Below, one piece after another: positions 1-30,637 of a stretch of 64,000 nucleotides of DNA (positions are counted from its first letter, which is position 1; each line of letters opens with the position of its first letter). Source of the DNA: Macrostomum lignano. Taxonomy: Eukaryota. The stretch is from assembly GCA_002269645.1 (NCBI GenBank), contig NIVC01002708.1, positions 1-64,000 of the forward strand, read 5' to 3'. A model generated the notes under the pieces. It saw nothing but the letters and a program-made list of their open reading frames with translations, did not search any database and had not been told where the DNA came from. Position numbers and translations under genes: made by a program.

Positions 1-112
1 AAATGAAGTGGCAAAGTTATGAATTCAATCGAAAACAGCGCAGACTCTATGGCCGCGCTGCCAACTTCTATGGACGAAATTAAATGACAATTTTATCAAA
101 CGAAAAATCCTA

Positions 113-750
113 TATTACTTGGTGTGGACGTATGGAAAGTTGCACTTGCATGAGTTTGGTGTCATTTGAAAGCGCAAGTCTCTTCTTTAAAATGACGATT
201 TTTCTCGCATGCATAAACTGTCTATGGCCAAATTCGATGCAGTAAATGAGAGGGGGCTGCCTCAGAAAACTAAGACTGCAGTTGCTGTGCTGAGTCAATA
301 ACAGTCTCGATCAATTGAGAGCGAGGTTAGGAGGGTCCTGCTGAACCAGATTCCCGAGAACTCTATACGCAGACGCCATCGACAAGATGCGAGACCGATG
401 GGAGAAGTGCGTCATGTCTGGTGGTGACTACGTTTAGAAAGACAACTCTGCCAACCGCGATGAGTGATTTTAACGTTGTTCGCTGTATAACAATTTTACT
501 TGTTATCACCTGTTTCTTACTGTGCTTTTGTTGTGTTTGTTTTGATTTTCTTGGAGTGATTAATAAAAGTTTTCTGCAGACACAGCTTGTGTAAGTCTAT
601 GACCGACCTTTCTCACTTAATTATTCATATCTATTGAAGCACATATTCAAATTCCTTGCAATTGTGTCATTTTAAAGAAGAGACTTGCCGCTTTCAAATG
701 ACACCAAACTCATGCAAGTGCAACTTCCCATACGTCCACACCGAGTAATA
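113..750 (+). mobile_element. Non-autonomous mariner-like element with about 84-bp inverted repeats and a degraded transposase C-terminus
   Basis: 113-196 is nearly the reverse complement of 666-750, with TA at the outer edges. Around 310-443 it encodes (with a frameshift and a stop) IESEVRRVLLNQIPEN/DAIDKMRDRWEKCVMSGGDYV*K, matching the mariner C-terminal RWxKCvxxxGDY motif. Confidence 0.7.
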
Positions 751-889
751 GTAACACTACCTTCCGGACGCTCCTCGTACAAAAGCAGTGACTTAAACCG
801 CTCTAAAATGACGAGATGTCGCGGTACAAGTCGCCAAGAAGTCGTCAAAGAGTCGCCTAAGGGTCAATTTTAAGGTTTTTATGTGTCTG

Positions 890-1268
890 CGACTCAGGGG
901 CCGTAGGGTCGTATCTGGGACGTGTCAGAGTCGCTGTAGAGTCACTGCGTTGCATTTAAAGTGCATCTGCGTCAATTAAATGAATGAGAATTGTACTTCC
1001 CATTTATATAACAACTCTATTAAGTTCACTTGAGTCAGTAGGAAGTTAAGCGCTAACATAACCATTTTCGGACAACTTTTTCGTAACTCTTTTACGATTC
1101 TGCCACTCACGCGATGCGATGGCTTGTGATTCAACAGTCGCCCCTCGGTCGCATTTTAAGTCGAAAGAGTCGTTAAAAAGTCACAAGAGTCGCCCCAGAG
1201 TCGCAGGTGGGTTCTTTGCAATGACCCTTCAGCGATTCTTGTCCCGTTTTCAACGTTTTCAACGGGAT
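890..1268 (+). repeat. Dispersed repeat copy (probable TE fragment); a second copy lies at 63160-63500 in the opposite orientation
   Basis: gtcgtatctgggacgtgtcagagtcgctgtagagtcactgcgttgc (about 909-953) and tttgcaatgacccttcagcga (about 1215-1235) match the reverse complement of about 63445-63490 and 63195-63217. Confidence 0.75.
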
Positions 1269-1604
1269 GGTAGAACGGATAGAGGTAGATAGAGAGGGAA
1301 TAGAAATAATTAGGCCAATTACAGGATTATAGCTCAAATAAGCTGTTTACAAAAAACAGCAATAAAATCTGCCTCGCACTGCATCGAGCAAAAGTACAAT
1401 GAATTAGAGAACGCAGGCTGTAAAAATGAAACGAAGTCTGAGTATGTTTACAGCTGCTGTTAGTTCAAAGAACCCTTCCCTCAGCATAGAAATTTAAATG
1501 TCCTAGCGTACTCAAAAACGTAGCACGTTTCACACTGCAAAATAACAAAATCCACCCCCGCTCCTAGACAGTCTACTATGAGTAGAAATGCAGGCTCAGC
1601 TCAC

Positions 1605-4600
1605 CTCGTGTCTCACTATAATGGTTGGCTGGCTGGACAAAAGCGGAGGCGTGGGATGGGCAGCGGAACTGGCAGCCACAGCCGGCGCCGGCGCAGCCTG
1701 ATGCTCTGGCTGCTGCTGCTGGAGGGACTGGCTAAGATTAAAACTCCAGCTGTTATTGGCTGTCCCAGTGCTGGGATTGGTAGAATTTGACAGCAGTCGC
1801 AGGAGCATGCCAAGCGTGTCAGTTCGATTAAGCGACTGCTGCTGCTGCTGCTGCTGCGACTGTTGCGACTGCTGCGACTGCTGCTGCTGTGAAGAAGTCG
1901 CTAACGGTACCGAAAGCATGGGATTGCCCAGCATGGATTGCCGCTGCTGTCCGAGGACGAGCCCTGGCTGCTGCCAACAGGCGGGGTGGTCAGCCCCGAG
2001 GCGCCGAATAGCAGCTGCTGAGCCTGCCGATGGCCCTCTAGCAAACCTTGAAGCAGCAGGGCCCCGTACTTGGCGTGGAAGGCTGATTGGAAGTGAAGGC
2101 CGATAAAATTCGAATTCTCTTCGTAGGAGAGAATGACTGTCTCGCAGCCAAAGAGCAGCTGCTGCTGCTGTGGAGGAGGCGGTGGAGGCGGCGCTGGCTG
2201 CGGCGCTGGCTGCGGCGGCGGAGTCGGGGGCACCGAGTCGTCCTCAGGCGGCAGGGGGCGCTTCGTTCCTGCCAGCTTGCTGCTCTGATGCTGCGTTTTC
2301 TTCATGTGCGAACAGCCGGCTGGGCAGCCGATCTGCTCTTGGCTGAGCAGCTCGCACACCTCGGCAATGAGATCGCGGTACGGCGAGGCCACGGCGCGGA
2401 CGCGGAAGGCGAATCGGCCGGCGAATTGCCAGTCGCCTCGGCCAGCCGGAGCGGCCTCCAGGCAGACGGTGACGCAGATGCCCTTCTTGCTGCCGCGGTC
2501 GACGTGCGAGCTGGGGCAGGTGATGGTCATCGGCACAGACACGTCAGCCTGGCTGCTGTCGGGGTGCACCGGCGGGCTGACGGTCAGCAGGCCCAGCACG
2601 CTGCTGTCTCCCAGGCAGACGTACTGGGCCGCTGATGTCAACAGCAGAAGAGCGGAATTGTAGTGCGCGGACAGCGACTCGGGGCCGCGCTGTGCGTACA
2701 CGGACCCGATTTTAGTCGGCAGCCGCCGGTTGCCGCTCTTCGAATTGGTGCCGTCATAGATGCCGCGCGCGTGGGCCTCGGCGCACTGGGCGCACTCGCG
2801 CAGGCTGGCCGACTTGTCGAAGATGAACACATTGAACACCATCCGGTATTGAAAGCGCCGATCGTAGCGGAAACTGCGGAATGAACATTGCTGCTCACAC
2901 TGTCACCTCACTCCCTGTACCCCTGCTCTCACTGCCACCTCACTCCCTGTACCCCTGCTCTCACTGTCACCTCACTCCCTGTACCCCTGCTCTCACTGTC
3001 ACCTCACTTCCTGTACCCTGCTCACACTGTCACCTCACTTCCTGTACCCCTGCTCTCACTGTCACCTCACTCCCTGTACCCCTGCTCACACTGTCACCTC
3101 ACTTCCTGTACCCCTGCTCACACTGTCACCTCACTCCCTGTATCCCTGCTCACACTGTCACCTCACTCCCTGTATCCCTGCTCACACTGCCACCTCACTC
3201 CCTGTATCCCTGCTCACACTGCCACCTCACTCCCTGTATCCCTGCTCACACTGCCACCTCACTCCCTGTACCCTGCTCACACTGCCACCTCACTCCCTGT
3301 ACCCTGCTCACACTGCCACCTCACTCCCTGTATCCCTGCTCTCACTGTTACCTCACTCCCTGTATCCCTGCTCACACTTTCACCTCACTCCCTGTATCCC
3401 TGCTCACACTGCCACCTCACTCCCTGTATCCCTGCTCTCACTGTCACCTCACTCCCTGTATCCCTGCTCACACTTTCACCTCACTCCCTGTATCCCTGCT
3501 CACATTGCCACCTCACTCCCTGTATCCCTGCTCACACTGCCACCTCACTCCCTGTATCCCTGCTCACACTGCCACCTCACTTCCTGTACCCCTGCTCACA
3601 CTGCCACCTCACTCCCTGTATCCCTGCTCACACTGCCACCTCACTCCCTGTATCCCTGCTCACACTGCCACCTCACTCCCTGTATCCCTGCTCTCACTGT
3701 TACCTCACTCCCTGTATCCCTGCTCACACTTTCACCTCACTCCCTGTACCCCTGCTCACACTGCCACCTCACTCCCTGTATCCCTGCTCACACTTTCACC
3801 TCACTCCCTGTATCCCTGCTCTCACTGTCACCTCACTCCCTGTATCCCTGCTCACACTTTCACCTCACTCCCTGTACCCCTGCTCACATTGCCACCTCAC
3901 TCCCTGTATCCCTGCTCACACTGCCACCTCACTCCCTGTATCCCTGCTCACACTGCCACCTCACTTCCTGTACCCTGCTCACACTGCCACCTCACTCCCT
4001 GTATCCCTGCTCACACTGCCACCTCACTCCCTGTATCCCTGCTCACACTGCCACCTCACTCCCTGTATCCCTGCTCACACTTTCACCTCACTCCCTGTAT
4101 CCCTGCTCACACTTTCACCTCACTCTCTGTACCCCTGCTCACACTGCCACCTCACTCCCTGTATCCCTGCTCACACTTTCACCTCACTCCCTGTATCCCT
4201 GCTCACACTGCCACCTCACTCCCTGTATCCCTGCTCTCACTGTTACCTCACTCCCTGTATCCCTGCTCACACTTTCACCTCACTCCCTGTACCCCTGCTC
4301 ACACTGCCACCTCACTCCCTGTATCCCTGCTCACACTTTCACCTCACTCCCTGTATCCCTGCTCACACTTTCACCTCACTCCCTGTACCCCTGCTCACAC
4401 TGCCACCTCACTCCCTGTATCCCTGCTCACACTTTCACCTCACTCCCTGTATCCCTGCTCACACTGCCACCTCACTCCCTGTATCCCTGCTTACACTGCC
4501 ACCTCACTCCCTGTATCCCTGCTCACACTGCCACCTCACTCCCTGTATCCAAGCTCAAAGGGTTACAAAAACTCTTTATATACAAGAATACCTGGCCACC

Positions 4601-4904
4601 AGAGACACCTCGTCCATTGGTTTTAGCCAAAGTGTGGGTATCACATCCGGGTGCTTGAGTATCTGGCAGTGAGCGGAGGCCGTGGCGCTGACAAGAGCCT
4701 CCTGGATCAGGGCCTGGTCCTGCGCTGACCAGCCCACAAAACAGTGCGGCACGCTGCTGCTCTTATTAAACCGATCGTGCAGCGTGGCACCCAGACTGGC
4801 CCGATTCTTAATGTCCACCCGGAACTCGTAGCTGCCGGGGTCGTCCGCTGTTTTGAAATATTCCTCACAGTTGGCATGCATGCTGACGTGCTCTCTTTGC
4901 CCTT
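1605..4904 (-). CDS. TP53-like: Divergent p53-family transcription factor (partial; exons 4904-4592 and 2873-1605, apparent 1-bp frameshift at about 1935)
   Basis: Phase-2 GT-AG intron 4591-2874 joins the two exons. By-eye matches to human p53: PGSYEFRV to GSYGFRL; CAEAH to CPHH; CPSSHVDRGSKKGICVTVCLE to [21 protein letters not shown] (ungapped); GRFAFRVRAVASPYRD to GRNSFEVRVCACPGRD (9/16 identical); GTKRPLP to STKRALP. A GTGAG donor at 1604 implies further exons to the left. Confidence 0.72.
2885..4550. repeat. Intronic minisatellite, about 32-bp unit (ctgctcacactgccacctcactccctgtatcc), roughly 50 copies
   Basis: Directly visible tandem array. It produces the spurious 581-aa and 594-aa ORFs. 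Confidence 0.97.
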
Positions 4905-5594
4905 CTAGTTAATAGCAAGACAGAGATTAGGCTGGACAGAGATTAGGCTGTTTTGAAGGTCATTAAGAAAGCCAAAATTTGCTCTACACGATGCTCTACG
5001 CGATGAACGCGTTAATAAATACGGTATTATGGCTGTTGCTATGCGAACATTTGATGTTGCTAGGCTAAAACGGCTGTTGCTATGCGAACATTGATGTTGC
5101 TAAGCTAATATTGATGTTGCTATGCTAGTTATCATATTTGCATGCAATGAATTTCAATAAAAAATAATGACACGTTAATTACTAACAACTTCTAGCTCCT
5201 GTATAAGAAATAAGGAACATCTAATTAGATTACTCTAAATAGTCAGAAAGAGTAACTCAAATTCAGTAAAAATTTATTTTTAAAAAGCTATGCAAATTTC
5301 TATGAAATTTTTATTTCATTAAAATATAGCTCGAATATAATTGAATCAATGTATCAAAGTTGCCAGCAAAGACCAGCATGACCGTTGATAAAATACTTTG
5401 CTTTATTGGCATTGCACGCAGATAAGTTAGTTATTTTTCTGAAATGAAAATCAGAATACAGTGATTATCATAAAATCATTCTAATCATAATTTAATCAAA
5501 GAATGAGTGACAAATTGAGAAATGTTGAAAATGGCAACACACGAAATCTGTTAAATCGTATGCAACAACATAGCAATATGCAACTCCAGCAGCC

Positions 5595-5840
5595 TTGTTG
5601 CTAAGCTACCATCCCAGTTGCTAAGCTACCAACCCAGCTGCTAAGCTACCAACCCTGTTGCTAAGCTACCAACCCAGTTGCTAACCCGCCAACGCAGTTG
5701 CTAAGCTACCATCCCAGTTGCTAAGCTACCATCCCAGTTGCTAAGCTACCATCCCAGTTGCTAAGCTACCAACACAGTTGCTAAGCTACCAACACAGTTG
5801 CTAACCCGCCAACGCAGTTGCTAAGCTACCATCCCAGTTT
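5595..5840. repeat. Minisatellite, 20-bp unit (gttgctaagctaccatccca)
   Basis: About 12 tandem copies. Confidence 0.95.
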
Positions 5841-5929: not shown

Positions 5930-7381
5930 CTATAGCTCAAACAGGGCAGCCTGTGGCACTTGTCCGCGCAAAGCGTCGCGAATCTGGTCCAAGCAGAGCC
6001 GCTGCATACTCAGCCGAGTCTGGCTCGTATGCGTGCCAAAGTGCGGCGTCACCCAGACGTTCAACCGGCTGTCGGACAGCAGCGGATGCTCGGCCGGCAG
6101 CGGCTCCGGCTCGGTGACGTCCAGCCCGGCAGCGGCGATGACGCCGGAGCGTAGGGCAGTCAGCAGAGCCTCCGTGTCGACGAGGCCGCCGCGGGCCACA
6201 TTGATGAGGGTCGCAGTCGACCGCATCAGCCGCAGAGTGTCGGCATTGATCATGTGCCGCGTGTCCGGGCCGAGCGGACAGGCCAGCACTACGAAATCGC
6301 AGCGTGGCAGCAGGTCGGCCAGGCTGGCGCAGTACTGCAGCTGGCCGCCGAGCTCCAACTCGAGCTGCGGCTCGGCCCGGCGGCGCTGATAATAGTACAA
6401 TCGGCAGCCGAAGCCCAGGCCGCAGCGGCGTGCTACGCAGCGGCCGATAGCGCCGAGGCCGACGATGCCGACGGTGGCGCCGGCGAGGTCGTTGCCAAGC
6501 GGCACAGCGGAACCGCCCCAGCTGGGCTGCTGGCCGGCCGGGGTGCGAATGTGTTCGAATACCTGGCGCTGACTGCGGGCCGTGTTCAGAATGTGCAGCA
6601 GGGCGGCGTCGGCGGTGGACTCGGCTATAACGCCGGGCGTGTGCGTTACTAGGATACGGCGAGATCTGCAAATAAAAATGCAGATAAGAGTTTTCTTGAG
6701 AATTTATCTAATTCTTACAAACGATGGAAACACAACTGGCAGTGCCGTAGCAGCAGGACTATCAAGGAGAGAATCAGTAGCAGGCTAGTAGAATTCACGG
6801 ATGCAGGGATAGACCTAGACGGGAAACTTGATTTCTAAGAAAATCTTTTTTGAAGGCTGACATTTCGCGGAAATGCACTACCGAGAGATGCTCATTTCAA
6901 ATGCAGAGGCATGAAAGGCACCAAAACAGGTATTAGGGCACCAAAACAGGCATTAGGGCACCAAAACAGGCATTAGGGCACCAAAACAGGCATTAGGGCA
7001 CCAAAACAGGTACTAGGGCACCAAAACAAGCATAGAGGTATTTAAATCAGGCATTAGAGGAGCGAAAATATCCATAAATTGATTTATAAACAGATTGAGG
7101 TGTATTTCTCACCTAAACATCTCCTGATTGATGTGCTCAACTCCAACGCCGTGATTGGCTGCAATTTTCAAATTCGGCAGCCGATCCAGCACTTCGGGGC
7201 AATCAATATAATTGGCCACCACGCAGATGACAGCGGCCGAGATTTCCGGCCACTGCCGCTGCGGCTCTGACTCAAATTCGTCAGTTGTCACTAAGCGAAA
7301 ATGGCGCCCAGCTTCGGCTAGGAATTCGGGCAACAATAAGCCGCTCCGCTTGGGGATGAGCAGGCCGGGCAGCTCAGCCAT
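5930..7381 (-). CDS. GRHPR-like: D-isomer-specific 2-hydroxyacid dehydrogenase (glyoxylate/hydroxypyruvate reductase-like); exons 7381-7113 and 6665-5930
   Basis: LPNLKIAANHGVGVEHI; phase-2 GT-AG intron gives ...EMFR/SRRILVTHTPGVIAESTADAA; Rossmann GIVGLGAIG; DFVVLACPL; LINVARGGLVD; AGLDVTEPEPLP; TPH catalytic His. ATG placed at 7381 because the ORF-track start at 7423 is TTG. Confidence 0.92.
6915..7030. repeat. Intronic minisatellite, 20-bp unit (ggcaccaaaacaggcattag)
   Basis: About 6 copies inside the dehydrogenase intron. Confidence 0.9.
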
Positions 7382-7654
7382 CTGCGGACATGCACCGACA
7401 AACAAGTTGTTGTGGCGTGACAAATTTTAAATAACATTTATTTTATATATATTATATTACTCTCAGGCATTTTCTAGTGTTTCTACTACAAGTAGGGTAG
7501 CTAAAAACGTCAATTATAATAATATCGGGCGGCCAAACCCAATTACTCCAAAACTAAGCTGACATCCCATCTGAGTTCCACTTATTGTTAAAATTAATTG
7601 CCAATTTTTGGCATATAAGATTGGCTAGGATAAAAATATTTCTACAACATCATC

Positions 7655-8330
7655 CATGGGATGGCCAATATTTGCCATAGACATTGACAGCTCTCACTTA
7701 CCCAATGGGATAGCAAATATTTGCCATAAAGATTGACAACTCTCATTTTACCCAACGGGATGGCCAATTTTGCCATAGACATTGACAGCTCTCATTTACC
7801 CAATGGGATAGCCAATATTTGCCATAAAGATTGACAACTCTCATTTTACCCAACGGGATGGCCAATTTTGCCATAGACATTGACAGATCTCATTTACCCA
7901 ATGGGATAGCCAAGATTTGCCATAGACATTGACAGCTCTCATTTACCCAATGGGATAGCCAATAATTGCCATAAAGATTGGACAACTCTCATTTACCCAA
8001 TGGGATAGCCAACATTTGCCATAGACATTGACAGCTCTCATTTATCCCCATGGGATGGCCAATATTTGCCATAGACATTGACAGCTCTCATTTACCCAAT
8101 GGGATAGCCAATATTTGCCATTGACATTGACAGCTCTCAGTTACCCTATGGGATGGCCAATATTTGCCATAGACATTGACAGCTCTCAGTTATCCAATGG
8201 GATGGCCGAGATTTGCTATAGACATTGACAGCTCTCATTTACCCAAATGAATGGCCAAGATTTGCCATAGACATGGACAGCTTTCATTTATCCCCATGGG
8301 ATGGCCAAGATTTGCCATAGACATTTATTT
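7655..8330. repeat. Minisatellite, about 49-bp unit (tttgccatagacattgacagctctcatttacccaatgggatagccaata)
   Basis: About 14 degenerate tandem copies. Confidence 0.95.
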
Positions 8331-9204: not shown

Positions 9205-9600
9205 TCAGGGGGTGTGTACATTGAAGTGGTGGGCTGCCAAGGGCGTGTGTACATTGGGGTGGTGGGCTGCCAAGGGCGTGTGTACATTGGGGTGGTGGGT
9301 TGCCATGGGTGTGTACATTGGAGTTGTGGGCTGCCAAGGGTGTGTACATTGGAGTTGTGGGCTGCCAAGGGCGTGTGTACATTGGGGTGGTGGGCTGCCA
9401 AGGGTGTGTACATTGGGGTGGTGGGCTGCCAAGGGTGTGTACATTGGGGTGGTGGGTTGCCAAGGGCGTGTACATTGGGGTGGTGGGCTGCCAAGGGTGT
9501 GTACATTGGGGTGGTGGGCTGCCAAGGGCGTGTACATTGGGGTGGTGGGCTGCCAAGGGTGTGTGTACATTGGGGTGGTGGGCTGTCAAGGGCATGTGTA
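9205..9600. repeat. Minisatellite, 31-33-bp unit (gtgtacattggggtggtgggctgccaagggc)
   Basis: About 12 tandem copies; explains the overlapping ORFs on both strands. Confidence 0.95.
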
Positions 9601-10214
9601 CTTCGATCGGGAAAAGGAATGACTAGTTGGGAACTTACCTAGAAATTATAATAGAGATAGGGGTCGGCTTTAATTGTACAGGGATACAAGATACAAGAAT
9701 CGCCGATATTAAAAAACTAATTAAAATTCAACATTCCTTTTATATAGCTCGTAATACAATGGAAAATATTAACAGCGATAATAGACCCTGAAAACCGTAG
9801 TGAAGTTGAAAGTAACACGGTAAAAATATGATAAATTACAAACAGTTATAAAGAACAGCAAGCTAAAAAATCATAATAAATGCTATTTTTGATCATCTTG
9901 AATAACAACGATGCATTCAGCCAAATGGGAACATGAAAATAATATTTAAAGTACAAACATTCGGTAAGAATTTTTTTTCGATTTTTTGCTATTTGCTTTC
10001 TTAAACAAAAAAATTCAAATATATGAACAGCAAACATCGCCTGGAAAATAGAACTTCGAACGCGCCAAAAGAATAGAGAAAACGTTTGCTTTACGCTACT
10101 TAGAGTGAGCGTCTGGTTTATGGAAAACGGCATAGCAAAATCAAGCACACAAATACTTGAGCGCAGTGCAAAAATACCAAATCTGTAGCTAAGACACGTG
10201 GCGCAGAACAGCAG

Positions 10215-10552
10215 ACTCAGATGGGAATCAGACTGGGGAACAAGGCGGAGTGACGGGGAATCAGACTGGGGAGCAAGGCAGAGTGACGGGGAAGCAGACT
10301 GGGGGAGCAGGGCGGAGTGACGGGGAATCAGACTGGGGGAGCAGGGCGGAGTGACGGGGAATCAGACTGGGGAACAAGGCGGAGTGACGGGGAATCAGAC
10401 TGGGGAGCAAGGCAGAGTGACGGGGAATCAGACTGGGGGAGCAGGGCGGAGTGACGGGGAATCAGACTGGGGAACAAGGCGGAGTGACGGGGAATCAGAC
10501 TGGGGAACAAGGCGGAGTGACGGGGAATCAGACTGGGGGAGCAGGGCGGAGT
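10215..10552. repeat. Minisatellite, 33-34-bp unit (gagtgacggggaatcagactggggaacaaggcg)
   Basis: About 10 tandem copies. Confidence 0.95.
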
Positions 10553-11364
10553 TTTGAGCAAAAGCAGACAGCAAAGTGAAGCGAATGAACAGGTCTGAGC
10601 CAAATTGACAAAACAAGCAAAACAGTAACACAAAAACAAGGCAAAAAGATCACGGGGCTGACGGGGTAACAGTTAAAGTGCACATCGGTTAATTAGCGCA
10701 ATAACGAATAGAGAAAGTCAACTAGAAAAAACGATTTAAAATAAAAATCTAAACTATAGCCTAGATGATAGGGACAGAGCGGCACAACCGAGGATATCAG
10801 AAAAAATTACCTAACGAGAGACCTTAGCTAGTATCCAAGTCCAGCAAAAATGCCCGCCATGGCCGCCAATTCACGACACAGTTTAAAGCTATGAAAAATT
10901 AGGAAAATAAAATTTAAACAATCTTAAAGTATGCAAAAACAGTGTTAACTAAATATTAAGAGGCTCTATAAGCAGATCGTTTTAAACAAACAGTGAATAG
11001 CTTTAGGATTAGCTGGGCCAACACAAACATATTGTGCTCAGGTTCATGCAGACGGCACAGTTGGCACAAGGACCTGCCTGACATTGGGAGGAGAAAAATG
11101 AGAAAAACTGCCATAATTCAACACACCTAAGTCATGTTAAAGTACCAACCCCCAGTACCAATATTAATATTATTAGGATCTTTTGGAAAACACAGCGCTA
11201 CAAGCAGCTGATTGCTGCTCTGCTAATATTAACCATTAACTGCAGCGACCGTAACAAGGATTTCAACTAACAAGCATAAACTCAAACGACTCGTCAATAG
11301 TAGATTATTAGAAATTGGCTTGGCCAGGCTGACTTTGAGAATGAATTCAAAAAATTGTCTGACT

Positions 11365-11431
11365 CAGACAGACAGACAGACACTAAGACACACAGAGAAT
11401 GACAGAAAGACAGACAGACAGACAGACACTA

Positions 11432-11468
<37 letters not shown>

Positions 11469-11471
11469 CTA

Positions 11472-11538
<67 letters not shown>

Positions 11539-11585
11539 GAGAGGGAGACAGACAGAAAGAAAGACAGAAATACAGAAATACAGAG
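11365..11585. repeat. (CAGA)n microsatellite
   Basis: Direct inspection. Confidence 0.97.
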
Positions 11586-11767
11586 ACACAAACGTTAACA
11601 TGGGCTGTCAGTCTTGAATATGCTTTTTACCCCTCTGTATTCGGATACAAAAAGCAAATGCTAGATAAGTACAAATAAAAAAGCTACGGTGGGCATTCAA
11701 TTTTATCGCAATTTTTCTCCCCAATATTTGGGCCATGAACCAACCGTGGCGGGCACTGGAAGCGAAA

Positions 11768-12566
11768 TCAGTGCGACCGGAGGCGGCCGCTGACAGTCGA
11801 GACGGAGGATGCCGACATTAGAGAGCCACCGCTGGCGCCAACGCTGACACTGAGGTTGCGACTGGCGCCGTCGCCGCCGCCGGAGCCGCGCCGAGTCACG
11901 GAGACGCGCAACGCTCTACGACTGGCTGCTGGCTGCTGCTGCTGCTGTTTCAATTGCTTGAGATTCTGCTTCCGCTGTTGCTGGTGCCTAGTCAGTTGAG
12001 GATCACTAGCCCTGCTGGGAACCATAGCAACGGCTGAGGAGTCGCCGCGACAATTATCGAACAGTTGCAGCGGCGGTGGCGGCGGCGGCGACGAGGAAGA
12101 AGACGACGACGGCGCGTGCGGCTGGTGCAGCGGCGGCGGGGATGAGGAGGAGTCCAGCGGGCCGAGCAGCGAGGCGATGTCAGCCAGGTCGGCGGCGCAG
12201 TCAACACTGTCGGAAGCCGGGGGCAGCTGGAACAGGTCGGCTGGCAGCAGCGACATGAGGTCGGAGGAGAGCTCACCGGACAGCTGGTCGGCGCCATCGA
12301 CGGTTAGCTGGCTAAGCGACGATTCTGTAGCTGCTGGGGGCGTCGGCGTCGGCGGCGGCAGGGACGCCGATTCGCTAACTGGCGGCGTCGGGGCTGTATT
12401 GAATGGAAAATAAAAAATCATATAGTTTAATCATAACACAGATCGCCTACTGAAAAGTAGCGAGAAAAGAATTTTAAGCAACTGTTTTATAGTCTGTACA
12501 AAAAGTATATATCTACATCATTTGCCGCAAACAAAATTAGAACAAACCCGGGAGCTTGTCCGGCAT
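11768..12566 (-). CDS. Hypothetical Pro/Ser/Gln-rich protein with an acidic segment; proposed exons 12566-12548 (MPDKLP) and 12393-11768
   Basis: GC-rich open frame with an acceptor aatacag at 12394. A phase-1 donor (ccgg|gtttgt at 12547) matches it, and ctaaccag precedes the ATG. No recognisable domain. Confidence 0.5.
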
Positions 12567-13602
12567 TTCCAAGAGCCTCTGCTGGTTAGTAGTCAGATTG
12601 AATATGACCAGCTATTTTTAAGTTACGAAATCATTTTTTTCTACTTTTAGGTTTCACAGTCCACAGACCGAAATTTCGCAACGCCTAAAAAGACGTCCCG
12701 GTGTTTTCGTGATGTACCACTAGGAAGTGAAATTCAACAGATGCTCAGCTCTTAAACGGCTCATATTTGTATTACTAAACATACGTATGTAAAAACGCAG
12801 GTAGGTAAGATTCGTGAGAACTTCATATTATACAATTGTCTACTGAAAGTCTAGGGAAAGTGCTCTATCAGTCATGTTGGGCCTACGGCAATTGACTGCT
12901 ACAGATTGAACTGCCACCCTAACCCTAAACCTAACCTAAAGCTCCTGGTCAAGTTTGTGTGGTACTTTGGGTGTAGGCATTAAATAACATGAAATAAAAC
13001 ATAATTAATAGTTTCCATAGCAGCGATACAAATGAAGGCGACACCAGTAAGCACGAGGGAGTAAAAATTATATTTTATAAAATGACTAAAAATAAGTTAC
13101 TGGGAATTCTGGGTACAGTGGGGACAATATTCAGACAATGGATCAAATTTAAAGGCTTACATGTAGATCATTAGTATGCTTATTAGCGCAAAGATTGCAT
13201 CACAACCAGTGCATCTACCTGCGGCGCCTTAGACATGACATTAAACAATCAATAACTGCATGCACACTTGAAATATCATTAAAACACTCGTTCCATTTTT
13301 GCACCTGTATAATAATTTGAGCAGAATCAAACTAGGAAAATTAAGCTACAATAAATAAAACAAAGTAAATAAATGGAGAGCTACGAACTTGGAATATACC
13401 AAAAGAAAGTAAAAATTTCCTTCTATACAATACAAATATCTTAGGATCGGCGACCAAATAGTAGAAATTGTCTCAGTCTTTTCTAGGCAGATTTTTGAGT
13501 CTATATAATATGGCCTGTATAGGATAACCGCTGTCTCTTATTATGGATTATATATTGCTACTAAAAATGACTGGGATAAATACAATAATAGCCTGATTTT
13601 GC

Positions 13603-14934
13603 TCAGCCGGCATCGCAGTCGGCAATCAGGCCAGCCAAATAGCTCGAGTCCGGCTGGAACTGAGAACAGGCAGCCACCGACAGATAATTGGCGCTGCGAT
13701 ACTTTTGGTACACGAATCGGTGCTGATGATGATGATCCTGATGGGGATGCTGGTGCCGCGACTCGGCGCCACCAGCCGCGGCTCTGAGCACGGCGCGAGC
13801 CAGGCTGGCGCAGACTGAGCGCAGTGACTCAGCTGAGTAGCCAGAGTAGAAGGCCAGCTGTTTGGACCAATCTCGCAATTCTGAGCCAAGCGAAACTCTA
13901 AGAGCGCCGGCGGCCAGCCGACTGGCCGGCAGGCAGGACAGATCGGTGCTGAGCGTGGCCAGCTCCAGCAGGTATTTAGCAATAAAGTGCAGCCGATTAT
14001 CGACGCCTGCTACCTTGGACAGTCGGCGCAGAAAGGTAATTGGCAGCGGAGGAAGCAGGTGAAAATCAAGCGCGCCAACCAGGCGAGTCTCCATAGTCAG
14101 AAGATCGCGCCGGCCACAGGCGCCGGCGCAGACGTGCAGCAAGTCGCCAAGGCTGATGCAGTAGACCTCTTCGAGCTTGGAGGCCAGCCAGAGCGCAGCA
14201 GCGCCCAGCGACTGCAACTGGTGCTTGGCTAAACACGAATCAACAGCCAGGTAGTGGTCTAGCAGGCGTACGGACAGGTGGAAAGTGTCCGATTGAAGCT
14301 CAAATCTGCCACTCAATTGAAGCAGCCAATCGACTAGGACAGCGCGAGATCGTTCAGTAATCTCGGCGTGTCCAGACAGTAAATTATTCGGCAAGGTGTA
14401 AGCTAATTCCCGTTCAGCCAGGTACACAAAGATGTCCTTAGCGTAGGCAGTTACCATGGTGCAGTGGCCTCGTTGATCAGCGTCTGGCACGTCAGCTGGC
14501 AGAGTCGCTGATCGATCCAAGCAGGGCAGCCTGCTTGGCTCAACTGGTGCAACCTCCACCGTAGATGTGGAGTCGGCCTCAGCGACTTTAACATCGGACT
14601 TGCATGTGTTGTCATTCTTATTACCTGTAGCTTTCTGACAAACAGAGCGGCGCAGCGACTGTTGCTGGCTATTGTTGGAGCACTGCCTCAGCGGCTCTCT
14701 AACAGGCTGCTGTCGACGTTTCCCGTTGATTTGCTGCTGAGAATCTTTTTGATTGACCGGCTGACTAATGCGACGTTGCTGGCGGAAATTCTGATAGCTT
14801 TTATCAGCAAAGCTGCGAATGTTCGACGCGACGAAGTCGTCCGGTTGTTGCTGTTGTTCTTGTTGTTCGCGTTGCTGCTTCCTTCGATTGCGCATGGTTT
14901 CAGCTAACAGACGCTGCGCCTTGTACATTGACAT
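13603..14934 (-). CDS. CCNB-like: B-type (G2/M) cyclin, intronless, divergent
   Basis: YAKDIFVYL, cyclin box ITERSRAVLVDWLL...LQSLGAAALWLASKLEEVY, cyclin-B signature FLRRLSK, AKYLLEL, and a D-box REPLRQCSN (14700-14674). ATG at 14934; the track start at 14994 is TTG. Confidence 0.9.
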   Translation of the reverse strand: MSMYKAQRLLAETMRNRRKQQREQQEQQQQPDDFVASNIRSFADKSYQNFRQQRRISQPVNQKDSQQQINGKRRQQPVREPLRQCSNNSQQQSLRRSVCQKATGNKNDNTCKSDVKVAEADSTSTVEVAPVEPSRLPCLDRSATLPADVPDADQRGHCTMVTAYAKDIFVYLAERELAYTLPNNLLSGHAEITERSRAVLVDWLLQLSGRFELQSDTFHLSVRLLDHYLAVDSCLAKHQLQSLGAAALWLASKLEEVYCISLGDLLHVCAGACGRRDLLTMETRLVGALDFHLLPPLPITFLRRLSKVAGVDNRLHFIAKYLLELATLSTDLSCLPASRLAAGALRVSLGSELRDWSKQLAFYSGYSAESLRSVCASLARAVLRAAAGGAESRHQHPHQDHHHQHRFVYQKYRSANYLSVAACSQFQPDSSYLAGLIADCDAG

Positions 14935-16249
14935 GCTTTTGAGATGTGCGAATAAATGAAGACAGAAATACAACAACCAAACCACTGATTGCAACGGGCC
15001 GCAATTTGGTTAGTAAAAATCGATTGCAAGGCGTGGCTAAATATAATTATTTCAAAAATAAATTTACGTACACGCTAGATAATACCAAGGCTTAGATTAG
15101 AAGAGCCTGGATTTATTGTATGCATTCCGTCCCCCCACCCACTATAACCAATCTAGTTAATATTTTTAATTAGTTCTTATCTATGGCCGATCACTCCCCA
15201 TGACTGCGATTGGACGGAAATTGGGGCGGGTTGGAGAGCGAGAAGCGCCCCGCCCCGCCCCGCCCCTCTAGGCACACAATTTCTAACAGTGTACATGTAC
15301 ACTGAAGAGCTGAAGTGAGTGCTCGTATTTTTCTGTTCAAATAAGTCTGATTTGTAACCTGTGTACATTTATTTTGTTTCACTAATAATTGGCCTTTAAA
15401 TGGAGAGCCGTAGCCTGGTGTATGTGCTCATTCTCAATTGCAGTCCCATGAATTTCGGGCTACATTGGAATCTCGGCTTGGCTTTGCTCGTGTAATTAAC
15501 GCCCTTGAGGCCAAATCCACAAAGCACAGTAAAGTGTGCAGCCCTTAGCCTAAAAAAGATGAATAGATAAAGTTTTTAGGACCGCTAAACACTCCTAGCT
15601 GTGTGAGTGTCATACATGCCCAACACCTGGCCGATTCGACCGGGTGGTGAGGTCTGGCCAAGGTAAGTTGCAAAAACGCCAACAAAAAAAATCGGACGTA
15701 ATACTAATTAGATGATGAGGAATTAACCTGAATAATAGTTAGTTACTCCTGCTGTTTACCCAAATTTACGTTAATTTTAGCTTTAGGGTTTCATAGGTAA
15801 GTCGCATTTTTGGTCAAAAAGTGAGTCGCACGGCCGGATGAAATTTCGAAGTTGGGCATGTATGGTGAGTGTGTGCCTGCGCGTAAGATTGTTGTATGCA
15901 TCCGTGCGCCGCGCTTATGTCTCTGCTCAGAGGAGTCGGCGGAATGAGCTGTAATGCCTCTTGCCGGTTTGTGACAATGTCGCTTAAAGTGTGCCAGGGC
16001 GTGGGGTTAGGGGACATCACAAACCCGAAAAAATCACAACTCTGAAAAGCGCTTTCCATCATCCTACAATCATAACTCCGAAAGTGGTAGCCTAGCAACG
16101 CCCAACGCTAATATGGTTTTCGGAGTTGTGATTTTTCGGGTTTGTGATGGTGACACCAGTGCGCCCCCAGGCCTATAAATGACTAACAAGTTGTTGTACT
16201 GGAAAATGGGTTTAAGCACCACCAAACTCTTCCAGCTTTTACAGCTATT

Positions 16250-16684
16250 TTAAAGATATAAACACATTTTAAGCTCAAAAGACTCACCGGCAGTAACTAC
16301 ACGCGGCATCGCTCTGTTGTAGGGCATCATTTTAATAACAAACGGACCGGTAGATTGCCGTTGGCACTGCTGCATCTGCGAATTTACAGATGCTGGCCGC
16401 AACGGCTCAGCTCGATGATGATGATGAAGCCCAAACTGATGCTGCACCGAGCTGGAGGCAGTGCACGCAGTCGGCACGGGCAATAGTTCAAAGTCAATAG
16501 CCAGACGGCTGCTTCTCCTAGCTGTCACCTGGTATCCGGGCCGACAGTCCGCGTCCGGCGAGTCGGGACTGTCCGGGTCGGAGGAATCGCATGTACTTTT
16601 AAGCACGCTACCGATAGGCAGTGCCACCAAGGCGCTCAGTGTGGATAATTCCAGAGTGAATCGGACTGGCAAAGGTGACGTCAT
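16250..16684 (-). CDS. Hypothetical protein exon (MTSPLPVRFTLELS...), probably spliced at a GTGAGT donor at 16287
   Basis: GC-rich ORF with an ATG at 16684 after a pyrimidine tract and AG, and a strong donor gccg|gtgagt. No recognisable domain; the downstream exon is not resolved. Confidence 0.45.
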   Translation of the reverse strand: MTSPLPVRFTLELSTLSALVALPIGSVLKSTCDSSDPDSPDSPDADCRPGYQVTARRSSRLAIDFELLPVPTACTASSSVQHQFGLHHHHRAEPLRPASVNSQMQQCQRQSTGPFVIKMMPYNRAMPRVVTAGESFELKMCLYL

Positions 16685-17824
16685 TGTTCTTCTTTGATGC
16701 AACAATGAGAAGCAAATTTAGTTTGCTGTCCGAACTGCTTTGGCATAAAACTCTCGATTGGGATATTATGTCTTTTTTCCTCGATGAAAGCTCGCGAATT
16801 GAATCAATTATTTTTTTGGTATAAGGAAGCTGCAATGATCAAGCTTCATTTGTTATAGAAAATAAAACTATTTCTATATATATCTATAATATCACAGCTC
16901 AGATCTTACTCTCAGCAGGGCGAGTTTTGTACTAACCGCGGCCACTTCTGCTTAACTTGCAGCGCTGGTGGTGAATGAGCTAACCTACTAGGCTAGTGAT
17001 ACTCATTAGTTACAGCTGAACTACTAATTTGAATAGGAAGCTCCATATGAAATAAATAAGAAAGCCATACGAGCGTGAATAAAGTGACTGAAATTTATGC
17101 AACTAGCAAGGCAGTACAAAAACGTTTATATATATACACCCGATGTGCAATTTTTCACACAATGTGCAGAGGGCATCCGGTACACGATGAATATGCACTA
17201 GCATTATTCATGGATGTCAAGGCTCATAAAGGGAGTTTCTGAGATCGAGATGTCAAGGCTCATAAAGGGAGTTTCTGAGATGTCAAGACTCATGGGGAGA
17301 GTAGCTTGAAATGCTGTGGCTTATGGGGCTTGCTAAGATGCAAAGGATCAATTGAGAGTGGTTGGTAGGCCAGACATCAAAGGGATAGTAAGAGTTAGGG
17401 TTTAGCCATGGCTTAAGTCGAGGCTCTGATGCTTTTTTGTTTTAAACATCGATTTCTACAAGAAAACTGGCAATAGTGGCAGTACAAGGTCAATAGCTAT
17501 GCACATGTAGTTTATTCAGAACTTTTTATTCCTTTTTCTGTAGCCTCCCCAACGTGGAGTGAAGATTGCTAGTCTATTCTAGCTCGTACACCTAATCATA
17601 GCTTGGCATTTTGACGGGAAATGTTTTTGAGTCGAATTTGTGCTAATGAACACTCGAAAATATTCGAGTTGACAAATGGACCAAATTATTTGAACATAGC
17701 ACATTTGATTTTTTTTAGACGATATAACCCTGATTTCTACGGCTTGATAGGACCAGCAAATGTAAATTGAGAAATGCACGCGAGCAATTTAAGTTTGTCT
17801 CTGTTGGACTTAAACTGCTTGCAC

Positions 17825-20800
17825 TCAGGCATTGGACAGTGGAGTCAGGGCGGCCAGGACATGGTCCAGTTTCTCCAAAGCATTAGCGCCAGCCAGCCGG
17901 TCCAATTGAACCCGGCGCCACTTGTCGCCGTTGCCGCCTCGATTAACTGAGACAACAAATTTCCTATTAGAATCCAGCTGCACTAGCAGAGAGCACTGGC
18001 CGTCAGGGGAGCGGAGCAGGCTAGCGGCCGGATCGGAGCTGTTCGCCAGCAGGTGCCAGCCGAGACTGGTGGAGGCGGAGTGCACGCACAGCAGGAGGTG
18101 CCGATCGGCCTCGCGCAGCAGGCAGGGCTGCAGGAGCCGTTTAACGTCGCCTAAGCGGGCAGCGACTCGCTGACCGCAGGTGGTGAGCAGAACAGCCTGC
18201 GGCGAGGAGGGGGGTGTCCAGCCTGATTTTGTATAGCCATTTTGAACCATCGTTAATTCCTGACCTCATAACTAAGGTAGCCAGTTGTCCAATTGCTAGT
18301 CGGACAAGCTAGTCGGACAAATAATGAAGACAGAACTGTCACTTAGCAGAAGCTAAATTTAGCAACAGACGGACAGTGACGTTTACGCTCGTAAAAAGTC
18401 GGAAGATGGTTGACGGGGGCGAGAGTCAGGCTATAATTAGGAGACGCGCAAGGAGAGGCCTAAAATTATCGATCGTGCAACTATTTGCACAGTTCTGAAT
18501 ACACGCACATGCACAAAGATAAAACGGCCCAATTGGGGGCTACTAAATCTGGGATTTTGGAGATGCGAAACTTAGGGATTGTGAGGCCGGGTGTAATTGT
18601 GGGTTGTGAAATTTAATTGGAAATGTGAATTTGACAATTGCCAACAAGCCCTACTCGCTACTTTCAGTAGTAAGCTGCGAATAGGCAATGAATTAACCAA
18701 TAACGCAGACAAACCTTCCTATCGCCGATGCTAATAAGCGCCCGGCTGCGCAACAGATCGTAGCTTCGACGAACAAATTCTACAGCTACGTGGGCGGATG
18801 TTGACGACCCGGTCTGCCAGTGCCAGACTAGGCGAGGCTCCGCCAACGGCCAGGCCTCCAGCAGGTTGGCAACTTCGCGATAGAGCGCCGAGTGCCGGCA
18901 GATGGCGGCCAGCCGGTCAAGCAGGCCGGTCTCCGGCTCCGGCACCGGCCGGGAGAACGGGCCGGCCTCGCAGCGCCGCTCGGACAGTCCGGCCGGAGCG
19001 CAGCTGGGGAACGGGCCGGGCTCCGGACGGGCCTGTTGGTGCCGCTTTAGTAGCAGGCATTCGAGCACGTTGCTTAGATAGTTTGGCCGGGGCAAGCGTT
19101 GTGCTTGCTGCTGCTGCTGCTGCTGCTGCTGGGATAAAGGCTTCGAGCTCTGATCGGTGAGTAGAACAAGCAACAGCTATGAATACACAGTGAGTACGAT
19201 TGAGATAGTTGGTGGGTGACCTAATCTGTAGATTTGGAAAGAGAAAGATCGCTGCCCAAAATCAAAGGATCTGGGAAGGCAGTCCAGATAAAAGATCTGG
19301 GAAAGCGGATATACAGCCTAAGGATCTGAGAAAAGAAAGCGGATGCACAGCCTGGGATCTGGGAAAGCGGATGCACAGCCAAGGATCTGGGAAAGCGGAT
19401 GCACAGCCTGGGGATCTGGGAAAGCGGATGCACAGCCAAGGATCTGGGAAAGCGGATGCACAGCCTGGGGATCTGGGAAAGCGGATGCACAGCCTGGGGA
19501 TCTGGGAAAGCGGATGCACAGCCTGGGGATCTGGGAAAGCGGATGCACAGCCTGGGGATCTGGGAAAGCGGATGCACAGCCTGGGGATCTGGGAAAGCGG
19601 ATGCACAGCCTGGGGATCTGGAAAAGCGGATGCACAGCCTGGGGATCTGGGAAAGCGGATGCACAGCCTGAGGAAGGTCTTATAGACGCAGCAATCTTAC
19701 CATCCCGGCGGACTGCTCCTGCTGCTGCTGCTGCTGTATCTCGGGTCCAACAACTTTGTACAGACTGACATTGGCGCACAGTCCAGGCGCCAACGGCAGC
19801 TCCACAGCGTCTGGTCCGGCGCGAATACCAGCCTGGACGCACTCGCAGCAGATGGTGTTGTACAGCTCTTGGGCTAGCAAGAGGCGCTGACTATTGCACA
19901 GGCTGACTCGCGGCAGCTCGGTTGCAGCCGGCTGCGGAAATAGCGACTCGCCAGACGACGTTCGCAGTGTCACCTGCGGGTGCAGATAATTGGATTGCAT
20001 AGATTTCCTGGCGCCTTGGTGGGCAACCATAGTCTAGCACACACTACTGGGCGATCGGAGTGTACAGTAGGACCATGTCCTTCCATTATTCAATAAATGA
20101 GTCGCGATGAGCTAGAAGAGGATTATCTATGACCTTCGCAGGCAGGTACAAAGCAAAATCTCACCTGCACACAAGCCTGACCATACAGGTGCCCCGGCAA
20201 TAGCACTTCGAAGCTGCTATCTTTGGCGGTCCGCAGCTCGAATCCGCCACTGTCCGGATAGCGGCTGCCGGCCGAGCGCAGCGATAGGTCGCCGCTAATG
20301 GTGTTGGCGACGCGGCGCAGCTTCCAGCACTGAGCGATCTGTTGCAACTCGAAGTTGCCAATAACCTCCTGCTGCAGCATTTGATTGCTGCCCCGGCCTT
20401 TTTCTAGCACCTCGGCGGCCGCTTGTACGCACTTTTTCTTGCCTTGAACAACTAGCTGGATTCGTTGTTCGTACTTCTCAACGTCGCGCTGCATCGGCTC
20501 TAAGGTAAGCGCCTGCGGCCGTTGACGCAGCGCAATCAACAGGTCCATCAGCGCAGTGGTCTCGTCAAGAGCCGCCGCTATCGACAAGCGAATCTGGAGG
20601 TGGAATTTGGAATTTTTTGTAAGCCTCATAAATCTGATCTAAGCTAATTGTGTGACGAACTATTTAGTTTCTGGGCTAATAGCAAAGCGGAACCAAATCT
20701 CATATCTAGAGGCTACTAGCGGAATCAAATCTTATATCTAGAGGCTACTAGCGGAACCAAATCTGATATATAGAGGCTACTAGCGGAACCAAATCTTATA

Positions 20801-28467: not shown

Positions 28468-29219
28468 CTGGGAAGGCACACGAATTAGCAAAGCTTGGAT
28501 ATAATTAAGTAGCTAAGCTGGCGCACACTTACAACTTTGACAATTTAAGGTGCGGGGTACATACAAGCTTAGCAATGGACAGGCAGCTCAGCGTTACTGT
28601 TAGTAGTAGATTATATATTAACGCTATGCTTTGTTAGTCATGCATTACATACTCATACGATTATAGATATAGCGGGCTTAAAACAATCATTTTCTATTCT
28701 ACAAAAAAACTTGATAAATTTACAAGCACAAGTAAACGTACGGCTGGGATATAATTGATTTAGCTCCGGTACAAAAGGAAATTTTGCAATTAATGCCAGG
28801 TTGAGCTTAGATACGAGTATAGAACCAACAGGCTAAAAGAACATGAAACTCAAATCTCGCACGCTGTTTACCGAGCTATTCAAATAGCTGAAGGAAAATC
28901 AACTTTATCGATAGGCACACTTACAGACACAAGTACAAGTAAACCTGAAAATATGCATCAACTAAAGAACAAACGTTTAGGAGGGGCTCTAGTAACAAAA
29001 TTAAAGGGTAGAACATCGTTTCCGAAGTATGATTGATATAAGTTGAGCCGCATGAAGGCAAACAGACAGGCAGACAGACAGACAAACGGAGGGACAGACA
29101 GTTGGTCTTGCTAGCTAATAATTAGAGCAAAACAAATCATTTAATTAGAAGACTTACATTACAGAATCATTTCGCGCATTTGATATGATCATTGAGAATA
29201 GCTTCATACGAGATTAAGG

Positions 29220-29782
29220 TAGGGGATAAGCGCTGCCGTCTCTATGGAAACCAAGCGTATCAGAGACACTTGGATAAGCGCTGCTGTCTCTATGGAAACC
29301 AAGCGTATCAGAGACACTTGGATAAGCGCTGCCGTCTCTATGGAAACCAAGCGTATCAGAGACACTTGGATAAGCGCTGTTGTCTCTATGGAAACCAAGC
29401 GTATCAGAGACACTTGGATAAGCGCTGCTGTCTCTATGGAAACCAAGCGTATCAGAGACACTTGGATAAGCGCTGCTGTCTCTATGGAAACCAAGCGTAT
29501 CAGAGACACTTGGATAAGCGCTGCTGTCTCTATGGAAACCAAGCGTATCAGAGACACTTGGATAAGCGCTGCTGTCTCTATGGAAACCAAGCGTATCAGA
29601 GACACTTGGATAAGCGCTGCTGTCTCTATGGAAACCAAGCGTATCAGAGACACTTGGATAAGCGCTGCTGTCTCTATGGAAACCAAGCGTATCAGAGACA
29701 CTTGGATAAGCGCTGCTGTCTCTATGGAAACCAAGCGTATCAGAGACACTTGGATAAGCGCTGCCGTCTCTATGGAAACCAT
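29220..29782. repeat. Minisatellite, 48-bp unit (ggataagcgctgctgtctctatggaaaccaagcgtatcagagacactt), about 12 near-identical copies
   Basis: Direct tandem array with no spacers. Confidence 0.97.
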
Positions 29783-30637
29783 CATTTAAACAAAAATGAA
29801 TCATGGATTTTAACTTTCCTAATGTCGAACTAAAATAGTTGTTCTACAGGCAAAGACAAACAATACGCTTCCCAAATAAGTGCATATGAGAAGCGACGCT
29901 ATAGAAAATGACGCGAAGATAGAAAATGAAAGAATCTTAATTAGCAGAACCCTAGAAAACAAGAATACGATTCGGAATTATTATTAGGAAAACTGTATTA
30001 GCACAACGCTGTACAGGTAATGATAAACTGTATGGGGTGAATTTCAGTTAAGTTCCAGTGCAGTTTAAGAAAAAGTACACAGAAAGCACTCGCTCTTCTT
30101 AAGTTAAATTAAACAATAATTTTTTAAGTTAGTAATACGCACAAGAATATTTGATTTGCAAACGACACATTGCCACGAAATTTGGCCAGCGCGTGTCATT
30201 AATACAGAATAATTAAATAACAGTATTAAATAAACTATACCAATAATTTAGATAAGCGAAAGGGAAAAACACAATAAATTTAAGCAATGCATTAAAGTCA
30301 AATTTTTTATCCACTCGATTACTTGATAAGCAAAAGTGTTGCAAGGCTGGAATAAGCGCAACAGTATATGGTGCAATAATAATATTAATAATCCGCAGTA
30401 TACGTAGAGTACAGGTTAGAAAACTTAATAATTAAATGAATCAATTAAAAGGGACAACGAAAAAATGGCCTTCTTTTCTTAGAAAAATAAACTGTGGTGA
30501 AGAATTAAGCTACTACATATGGATAAATATATATTATACTCGCGGGTCTGATCGCAAGGCAGAGAAGAATTCGCGGTGTCGTTTTTTACAGTTCCTAAAT
30601 TTGGTGTAGCCTGGGACAGCCTGTTTGTTTATTTAGA

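Follow-up and report, generated by a model that had tools for sequence, protein, structure and literature searches.

Does the minus-strand gene at the beginning of contig NIVC01002708.1 of the flatworm Macrostomum lignano (assembly GCA_002269645.1) encode a member of the p53 family? The question was raised for a stretch of 64,000 nucleotides (positions 1 to 64,000 of this contig, here called the window), for which an original prediction, made from the sequence alone, had proposed a highly divergent p53 gene. According to the comparisons described here, the gene codes with a probability of about 0.8 for a highly divergent DNA-binding regulator of the p53/p63/p73 family, which was overlooked by automated annotation. 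This reading is based on the C-terminal half of the DNA-binding domain, the weak Pfam match of a paralogue, collinear motifs and the domain architecture. Homology to p53 is likely, but it lies below standard detection; neither a standard profile match nor an independent structure stands behind it. The C-terminal half was recovered in the register that had been predicted, whereas the Pfam family P53 (PF00870), searches of the PDB and the proposed oligomerisation segment did not bear the prediction out. Most likely the gene is a new member of the p53 family and not a new kind of system.

At the level of sequence, residues ~177-304 of the protein spliced from the two exons of the window were shown to be significantly similar, and in register, to the S5/S6-to-H2 half of the p53/p63 DNA-binding domain. 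BLASTP aligned residues 184-327 with residues 206-322 of human p53 (E=0.005) and residues 177-304 with human p63 (E=1e-4), in the latter case extending through GTKRP(L/F). The human p53 query has a database match of 100%, and the query for the p63 DNA-binding domain is exactly that of PDB 2RMN. When a profile of the protein and its paralogue was compared by hhalign with 16 vertebrate p53 sequences, P=3.7e-4 (probability 36%) was obtained; with p53, p63 and p73 together the values were P=1.7e-4 and 49%. The whole protein scored 8.1 bits (P=6.9e-5) with a hidden Markov model (HMM) of 107 vertebrate p53 sequences, which was reached by 2 of 20,000 shuffled sequences. With the C-terminal half of the same model, residues 170-309 scored 13.1 bits (P=3.7e-6), a value found for none of 20,000 shuffles. 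Exon 2 also ranked first among the 464 stop-to-stop open reading frames (ORFs) of the window, with E=0.03 for the whole p53 model and 0.0068 for its C-terminal half. All directed tests gave one register. The top match of the human p53 search (P0005) is an engineered fusion, for which P0006 was substituted in A3 and A4, the later alignments; P0005 is still included in the profile A1, used for the hhalign comparison with vertebrate p53 and for the oligomerisation test, and in the vertebrate p53 HMMs.

Furthermore, a second protein of M. lignano shows the same resemblance. P0002 (UniRef A0A1I8GLG0, 486 amino acids) was the only relative detected among 1.84 billion representative proteins (E=7.5e-10, 26% identity). 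In a library-wide Pfam scan its sole match was PF00870, with E=0.0053 and 17.1 bits over profile positions 91-189 of 193, covering the same region as the p53-aligned part of the window protein. This score is lower than the gathering score of the family (27 bits), and the P0002 fragment alone gave E=0.033. The stretch conserved between the paralogues is the p53 signature: TC(P/M)(S/T)(S/T)H in L3, the equivalent of E258 and GR..FR.R.V.SP.RD(L/I)..EV. A motif GCxxGCxH is shared as well. In contrast to the window protein, P0002 has no segment matching residues ~100-125, maybe due to a gap in the gene model, and no SAM match, and it reaches Pfam P53.

All motifs quoted in the original prediction are present in the spliced protein as translated from the minus strand (Table 1). 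BLASTP, hhalign and MAFFT agreed with the predicted correspondences: R273, R280 and D281 of p53 are kept as R256, R263 and D264, while R248/R249 are replaced by K226/K227, C277 by S260, R282 by L265 and C242 by H220. The core of the similarity holds an L3-like CPSSH...KK (C216, H220, K226/K227), an S9-like ICVTVCLE and the S10/H2-like GRFAFRVRAVASPYRD. The last of these carries the loop-sheet-helix DNA-contact signature, with 9 of 16 residues identical to G266-D281 of p53 (GRNSFEVRVCACPGRD). It keeps the equivalents of R273, A276, P278, R280 and D281 in a register common to BLASTP, hhalign, HMMER and MAFFT; in or next to the loop-sheet-helix, C277 is substituted by Ser and R282 by Leu. The PROSITE-type L3 signature with R248 was not found, as in the sequence TCPSSHVDRGSKK only C, S and S are identical. 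Alignment of the protein and P0002 with 37 vertebrate p53 sequences by MAFFT resulted in 18 columns invariant across the 39 sequences, including G105, H193, Y205, D208, C238, S240, L257, E258, G266, R267, F270, R273, P278, R280, D281 and E285. This alignment also added a motif absent from the prediction, CQILKHPDVIPTLWL (72-86), which pairs with CQLAKTCPVQLWV (135-147) of p53, and showed ~70 residues inserted relative to p53 in the N-terminal half of the domain. For this half the two best local alignments place GSYEFRV at S1 and NVFIFDKSASLRECAQCAE at S4-L2, in the correct order.

The exons of the window belong to the gene BOX15_Mlig030740g1, the annotated copy of which is located on contig NIVC01002207.1 (L001) of the same assembly. 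Its deposited protein PAA59970.1 (P0001, 698 amino acids) was found by HMMER among the representative proteins and is 100% identical to the spliced protein over residues 1-304. The predicted splice from 4592 to 2873 (GT..AG), which preserves the reading frame when the minus strand is read and translated directly, lies within this identity, and the deposited protein has the same junction. The expectation that automated annotation might label the product as hypothetical also held: it is a 'hypothetical protein' at NCBI and only a 'SAM domain-containing protein' at UniProt. No paper found by literature search names the gene. It consists of three exons, with only exons 1 and 2 inside the window (minus strand, 1-4881 including a partial intron 2). 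Translation would start at the ATG 4881-4879, which is preceded at a distance of ten codons by a TAA in the same frame (4911-4909). Exon 2 codes for the remainder of the p53-like domain, the basic motif GTKRPLP, a Pro/Gln-rich linker and a Gln-rich region. Position 1605, formerly taken as the end of the gene, marks the intron 2 donor; exon 3, which comprises codons 521-698 and includes a SAM-like domain, is found at 16528-17085 of NIVC01002207.1, beyond the end of the window contig. No gene was called at this place on NIVC01002708.1, because the contig ends inside intron 2. The two copies of the locus are 99.3-99.5% identical, window position 1 corresponding to position 14888 of NIVC01002207.1, and could be haplotypes, recent duplicates or products of redundant assembly. 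Upstream, at about 9300-14860 of the window, the similarity of the contigs falls to ~96% with gaps.

Could the window copy be a dead gene? In the 1,559 nt of exon compared, the sole difference between the contigs is a 1-bp deletion in the C-run at 1935-1936, where the window has CC and NIVC01002207.1 has CCC, so that the frame shifts into a TAG at 1903-1901. If this were a real deletion, a null allele or pseudogene would result, whose protein would stop at residue 420 and lack both the Gln-rich region and the SAM domain; the gene being uncalled on NIVC01002708.1 would agree with it. We regard this as unlikely, since no other exonic difference was detected, the ~20 intron differences are nearly all single-base indels, as is usual for long-read assembly errors, and the absent gene call is accounted for by the contig end. 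As the exons are otherwise identical and the intron differences are of this kind, the frameshift is very probably a long-read assembly error in an intact gene.

Several results weigh against an assignment to the p53 family. The Pfam check, which the original prediction had named as its primary test, failed: no match to PF00870 was obtained even at E<=10 for the spliced protein, full-length P0001 or the C-terminal half. phmmer against all PDB sequences, among them hundreds of p53/p63/p73 chains, returned low-complexity noise only, and no p53 was found in the PDB with a two-sequence profile of the protein and P0002 or with P0002 alone. The best PDB match of the two-sequence profile was ribosomal L19 (E=0.18), which was taken as chance. 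With the vertebrate p53 HMM the N-terminal half of the domain was not above chance (P ~0.05), and all hhalign probabilities are below 50%. No orthologues from other species were found; the exhaustive HMMER search returned the protein itself and P0002 only, and further homologue searches with the domain and with the paralogue fragment found nothing. It was the resemblance already seen that guided the choice of the directed tests, and multiplying the P value of the C-terminal half by ~25,000 families gives E ~0.1. In addition, MAFFT alternatively pairs RRCP of p53 with RRLP (146-149), which removes the C176 ligand, and the SAM match described below is under the Pfam threshold and encoded outside the window in exon 3. 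Zinc site, DNA binding and oligomerisation of the window protein are all properties that we infer.

The predicted structure was also considered. A single-sequence AlphaFold2 model is unusable, with a predicted local distance difference test score (pLDDT) of 36.8, and Foldseek on this model gave noise, with T-box/STAT beta-sandwiches on top (E>=0.23), which likewise speaks against the assignment. A second AlphaFold2 model was built on the MAFFT alignment with P0002 and 37 p53 rows and reached pLDDT 53.6, a predicted template modelling score (pTM) of 0.52 and 68 residues at pLDDT >=70. Its top 50 PDB matches in Foldseek are all p53/p63/p73 cores, the homologue of the annelid Alvinella included, with E from 8e-6 and target-normalised TM of 0.5-0.59. 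This model is circular; it indicates compatibility with the p53 fold only and was not counted as a test. The proposed structural check gave a p53-fold match from the p53-seeded alignment and none from the single sequence.

Taken as a whole, the silence of Pfam and the PDB, the N-terminal half, the hhalign probabilities of 36-49%, the choice of every significant test after the resemblance had been noticed and the origin of the sole p53-like model would agree with a chance resemblance, P0001 and P0002 being a lineage-specific SAM protein family of M. lignano that is unrelated to p53 and has coincidental motifs. Nevertheless, we consider this quite unlikely. The C-terminal half surpassed every shuffled sequence, and P0002, scanned independently against the whole Pfam library, matches P53 and no other family. 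The matching residues are those of DNA contact and structure (R273, A276, P278, R280, D281, C238, E258), seven motifs are collinear, GTKRP follows the domain at the position known from p63, and a weak C-terminal SAM domain completes the architecture of p63/p73.

For a divergent p53-family regulator the following mechanism can be proposed. The domain would adopt the p53-type beta-sandwich fold, with the ~70 extra residues housed in loops. Its loop-sheet-helix would contact DNA, R263 (R280 in p53) reading a major-groove guanine, R256 (R273) holding the phosphate backbone and K226 (R248) reaching into the minor groove. Zinc would join the L2-like and L3-like loops via C127 (or C124), H131, C216 and H220, in a Cys2His2 version of the Cys3His site of p53. 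DNA specificity may be altered by Lys for Arg in L3 and by Ser for C277.

Regarding the zinc site, the predicted replacement of C242 by His is supported by the alignment (C238=C216, C242=H220), and this His is kept in P0002. The assignment of C176/H179 to CAEAH is uncertain: the motif is present, but the p53 spacing is not (C-x3-H instead of C-x2-H), and the alignment is ambiguous. The spacing is C127-x3-H131 with an extra Cys at 124, and C-x4-H in P0002. A C-H-C-H zinc site deduced from these residues is a reasonable hypothesis, not an observation. The conserved GCxxGCxH motif could be part of a metal site that is either rearranged or additional.

The segment IGLHFQSAFHAKYGALLLQGLLE, which had been suggested as an oligomerisation domain, has no detectable similarity to the p53 tetramerisation domain. 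In a comparison of residues 328-424 with the p53 profile by hhalign the tetramerisation region was unmatched (probability 0.8%, to a different region), and Pfam P53_tetramer gave no match in the spliced protein or in full-length P0001. Only its position fits; together with the predicted helicity it is compatible with an oligomerisation domain. For an N-terminal transactivation domain (FxxLW-type) no P53_TAD match was found, and none is encoded in exon 1, because the DNA-binding domain starts at residue 16; the gene may have an unannotated upstream exon. The full gene product matched Pfam SAM_2 at residues 575-609 with E=0.014 and 16 bits (cut-off 20.5), and the best PDB match of the tail was a SHIP2/EphA2 SAM construct (E=0.54). 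A BLASTP match of residues 297-403 to the SAM region of p63 (E=0.19) was judged not significant.

That the protein is a degenerate p53 descendant, which lost p53-type zinc and DNA binding and took over another role, e.g. as a SAM-mediated scaffold, is very unlikely: the extreme, Pfam-invisible divergence, the changes of R248/R249 to KK, C277 to S and R282 to L, the altered L2 ligand spacing that is unequal between the paralogues, the ~70 inserted residues and the lack of a transactivation or detectable tetramerisation domain would suit it, but the paralogues, only 26% identical overall, keep the DNA-contact helix GR..FR.R.V.SP.RD, the L3 Cys...His and E258, a pattern to be expected if the binding of DNA and zinc is selected for, zinc can be ligated by His, and a p53-type motif is reported as a conserved marker of epidermal-lineage accessible chromatin across flatworms in a study mentioning M. 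lignano (PMC11398382).

Among known systems, human TP63/TP73 are the closest to the probable p53-family protein of the window. p63 was the best pairwise match, over the S5/S6-to-H2 half and the basic motif GTKRP. The window protein keeps R273, A276, P278, R280, D281, C238, S240/S241 and E258 as well as the order of domain, basic motif, linker and C-terminal SAM, the SAM match being weak. It differs from TP63/TP73 in its identity of ~27% over only ~130 residues, the negative PF00870 result, a His as fourth zinc ligand, KK for R248/R249 and the N-half insertion of ~70 residues; furthermore, it has no recognisable oligomerisation domain or N-terminal transactivation region, and an extra GCxxGCxH. 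CEP-1 of Caenorhabditis elegans is a p53 relative barely visible to sequence profiles, which was confirmed by structure and has kept the zinc ligands (Cys3His) as well as a C-terminal SAM domain. A very divergent p53 relative with SAM thus has a precedent. The Pfam family of CEP-1 itself gave no match to the window protein in the Pfam scan.

Within the same phylum, schistosome p53-1 and p53-2 are reported to contain the Pfam domain PF00870, but neither a tetramerisation nor a SAM domain (PMC9478680). Stem-cell and epidermal lineages are controlled by Smed-p53 and schistosome p53-1, whereas p53-2 regulates the genotoxic stress response (PMC9478680). These proteins also lack recognisable transactivation and tetramerisation domains; compared by published description, the window protein has diverged further in its DNA-binding domain, fails PF00870 and has a SAM-like C-terminus. 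By analogy, Smed-p53, p53-1 and p53-2 are likely functional analogues of the window gene, which would then probably take part in the control of stem-cell and epidermal lineages or in the response to genotoxic stress.

As a tentative extension, M. lignano may have a lineage-specific, Pfam-invisible p53/p63-like subfamily of at least two paralogues with a remodelled metal site, Lys-for-Arg contacts and a retained SAM domain; we hold this to be possible, but rather doubtful. In its metal site His would be the fourth ligand, the L2 Cys/His pair would be shifted, and GCxxGCxH might add a second site. If such a subfamily exists, a free-living flatworm would carry at least two genes of the p53 family, at odds with the view that a second paralogue is confined to parasites; no second paralogue was found in 19 genomes or transcriptomes of free-living flatworms (PMC9478680). 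In that case one of the copies might act in the response to genotoxic stress. M. lignano is a transgenic model for regeneration and stem cells, and recognition of these genes as p53/p63-like gives two targets for RNA interference and irradiation. Biophysical studies could also use the gene as a naturally occurring Cys-to-His variant to compare with the p53 zinc site. In general, annotation by domain profiles can miss p53 relatives in fast-evolving lineages.

Table 1 Features of the p53-like gene in the window (all on the minus strand; residues refer to the spliced protein)
Feature	Residues	Position in window	Strand	Remarks
Exon 1	codons 1-96 plus 2 nt	4592..4881	-	identical to exon 1 on NIVC01002207.1
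GSYEFRV (exon 1)	16-22	4836-4816	-	read and translated
CQILKHPDVIPTLWL (exon 1)	72-86	4668-4624	-	read and translated
Intron 1		2874..4591	-	1,718 bp; donor GT 4591-4590, acceptor AG 2875-2874
Exon 2	codons 97-520 of the intact gene	1605..2873	-	
CAQCAEAH (C124, C127, H131)	124-131	2771..2794	-	candidate L2/H1 zinc ligands; alignment ambiguous
Best-conserved p53-like core		2372..2518	-	BLASTP, hhalign, C-half HMM; conserved in P0002
CPSSHVDRGSKKGICVTVCLE	216-236	2518-2456	-	translation
GRFAFRVRAVASPYRD, S10/H2-like	249-264	2419-2372	-	R256, A259, P261, R263, D264
GCPAGCSH (C280, C284, H286)	279-286	2306..2329	-	after H2-like helix; without p53/p63/p73 counterpart; GCRMGCGH in the paralogue
GTKRPLP	299-305	2249..2269	-	position of p53 K305/R306 and of the p63 GTKRPF nuclear-localisation region (BLASTP)
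IGLHFQSAFHAKYGALLLQGLLE	354-376	2036..2104	-	oligomerisation segment of the prediction; after basic motif
C-run		1935..1936	-	CC in window, CCC on NIVC01002207.1; frame shifted to TAG 1903-1901
Intron 2, 5' part		1..1604	-	donor GT 1604-1603; contig ends within intron

A 32-bp tandem repeat (2891-4557, ~52 copies, 94% matches) with the plus-strand consensus CTGCTCACACTGCCACCTCACTCCCTGTATCC takes up nearly all of intron 1. This repeat yields long spurious ORFs of 581 and 594 amino acids on the plus strand. The upstream neighbour of the p53-like gene (5933-7387, minus strand) is a two-exon gene for a D-isomer-specific 2-hydroxyacid dehydrogenase (P0003, with 2-Hacid_dh and 2-Hacid_dh_C), which maps to both contigs. 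On NIVC01002708.1 it is recorded at 7387-5930, in agreement with its place in the window, and the window was assigned to positions 1-64,000 of this contig on these grounds. An older gene model (P0004, 945 amino acids) fuses this dehydrogenase to the p53-like gene with an acceptor near 4867, which hints at read-through or operon-type transcription.

Further genes were recognised in the window. An ORF of 463 amino acids at 13603-14994 (minus strand) with Cyclin_N (E=4e-30) and Cyclin_C (E=3e-18) indicates an A/B-type cyclin gene, and an exon at 35512-36234 (minus strand) that codes for a beta-TrCP D domain, an F-box and the first part of the WD40 repeats indicates a beta-TrCP/Slimb-type F-box protein. 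On the plus strand, an intronless ORF of 500 amino acids at 47343-48845 with Galactosyl_T (E=3e-33) points to a beta-1,3-galactosyltransferase-like gene, and exons of an alpha-2-macroglobulin/thioester-containing protein (MG3, A2M, TED) are located at 53789-54637 and 61337-63071. Between these exons, the region 54000-59000 shows an extreme AT skew of -0.57 to -0.65 and long Ser/Pro/Leu-rich repeat ORFs at 57568-58942; these are probably intronic tandem repeats. Many more tandem arrays are situated at 4919-5839, 6917-7033, 7656-8325, 19209-19842, 29192-29833 and 32451-33186, both intergenic and intronic, with periods of 16-49 bp where measured and repeat-derived ORFs in several frames.

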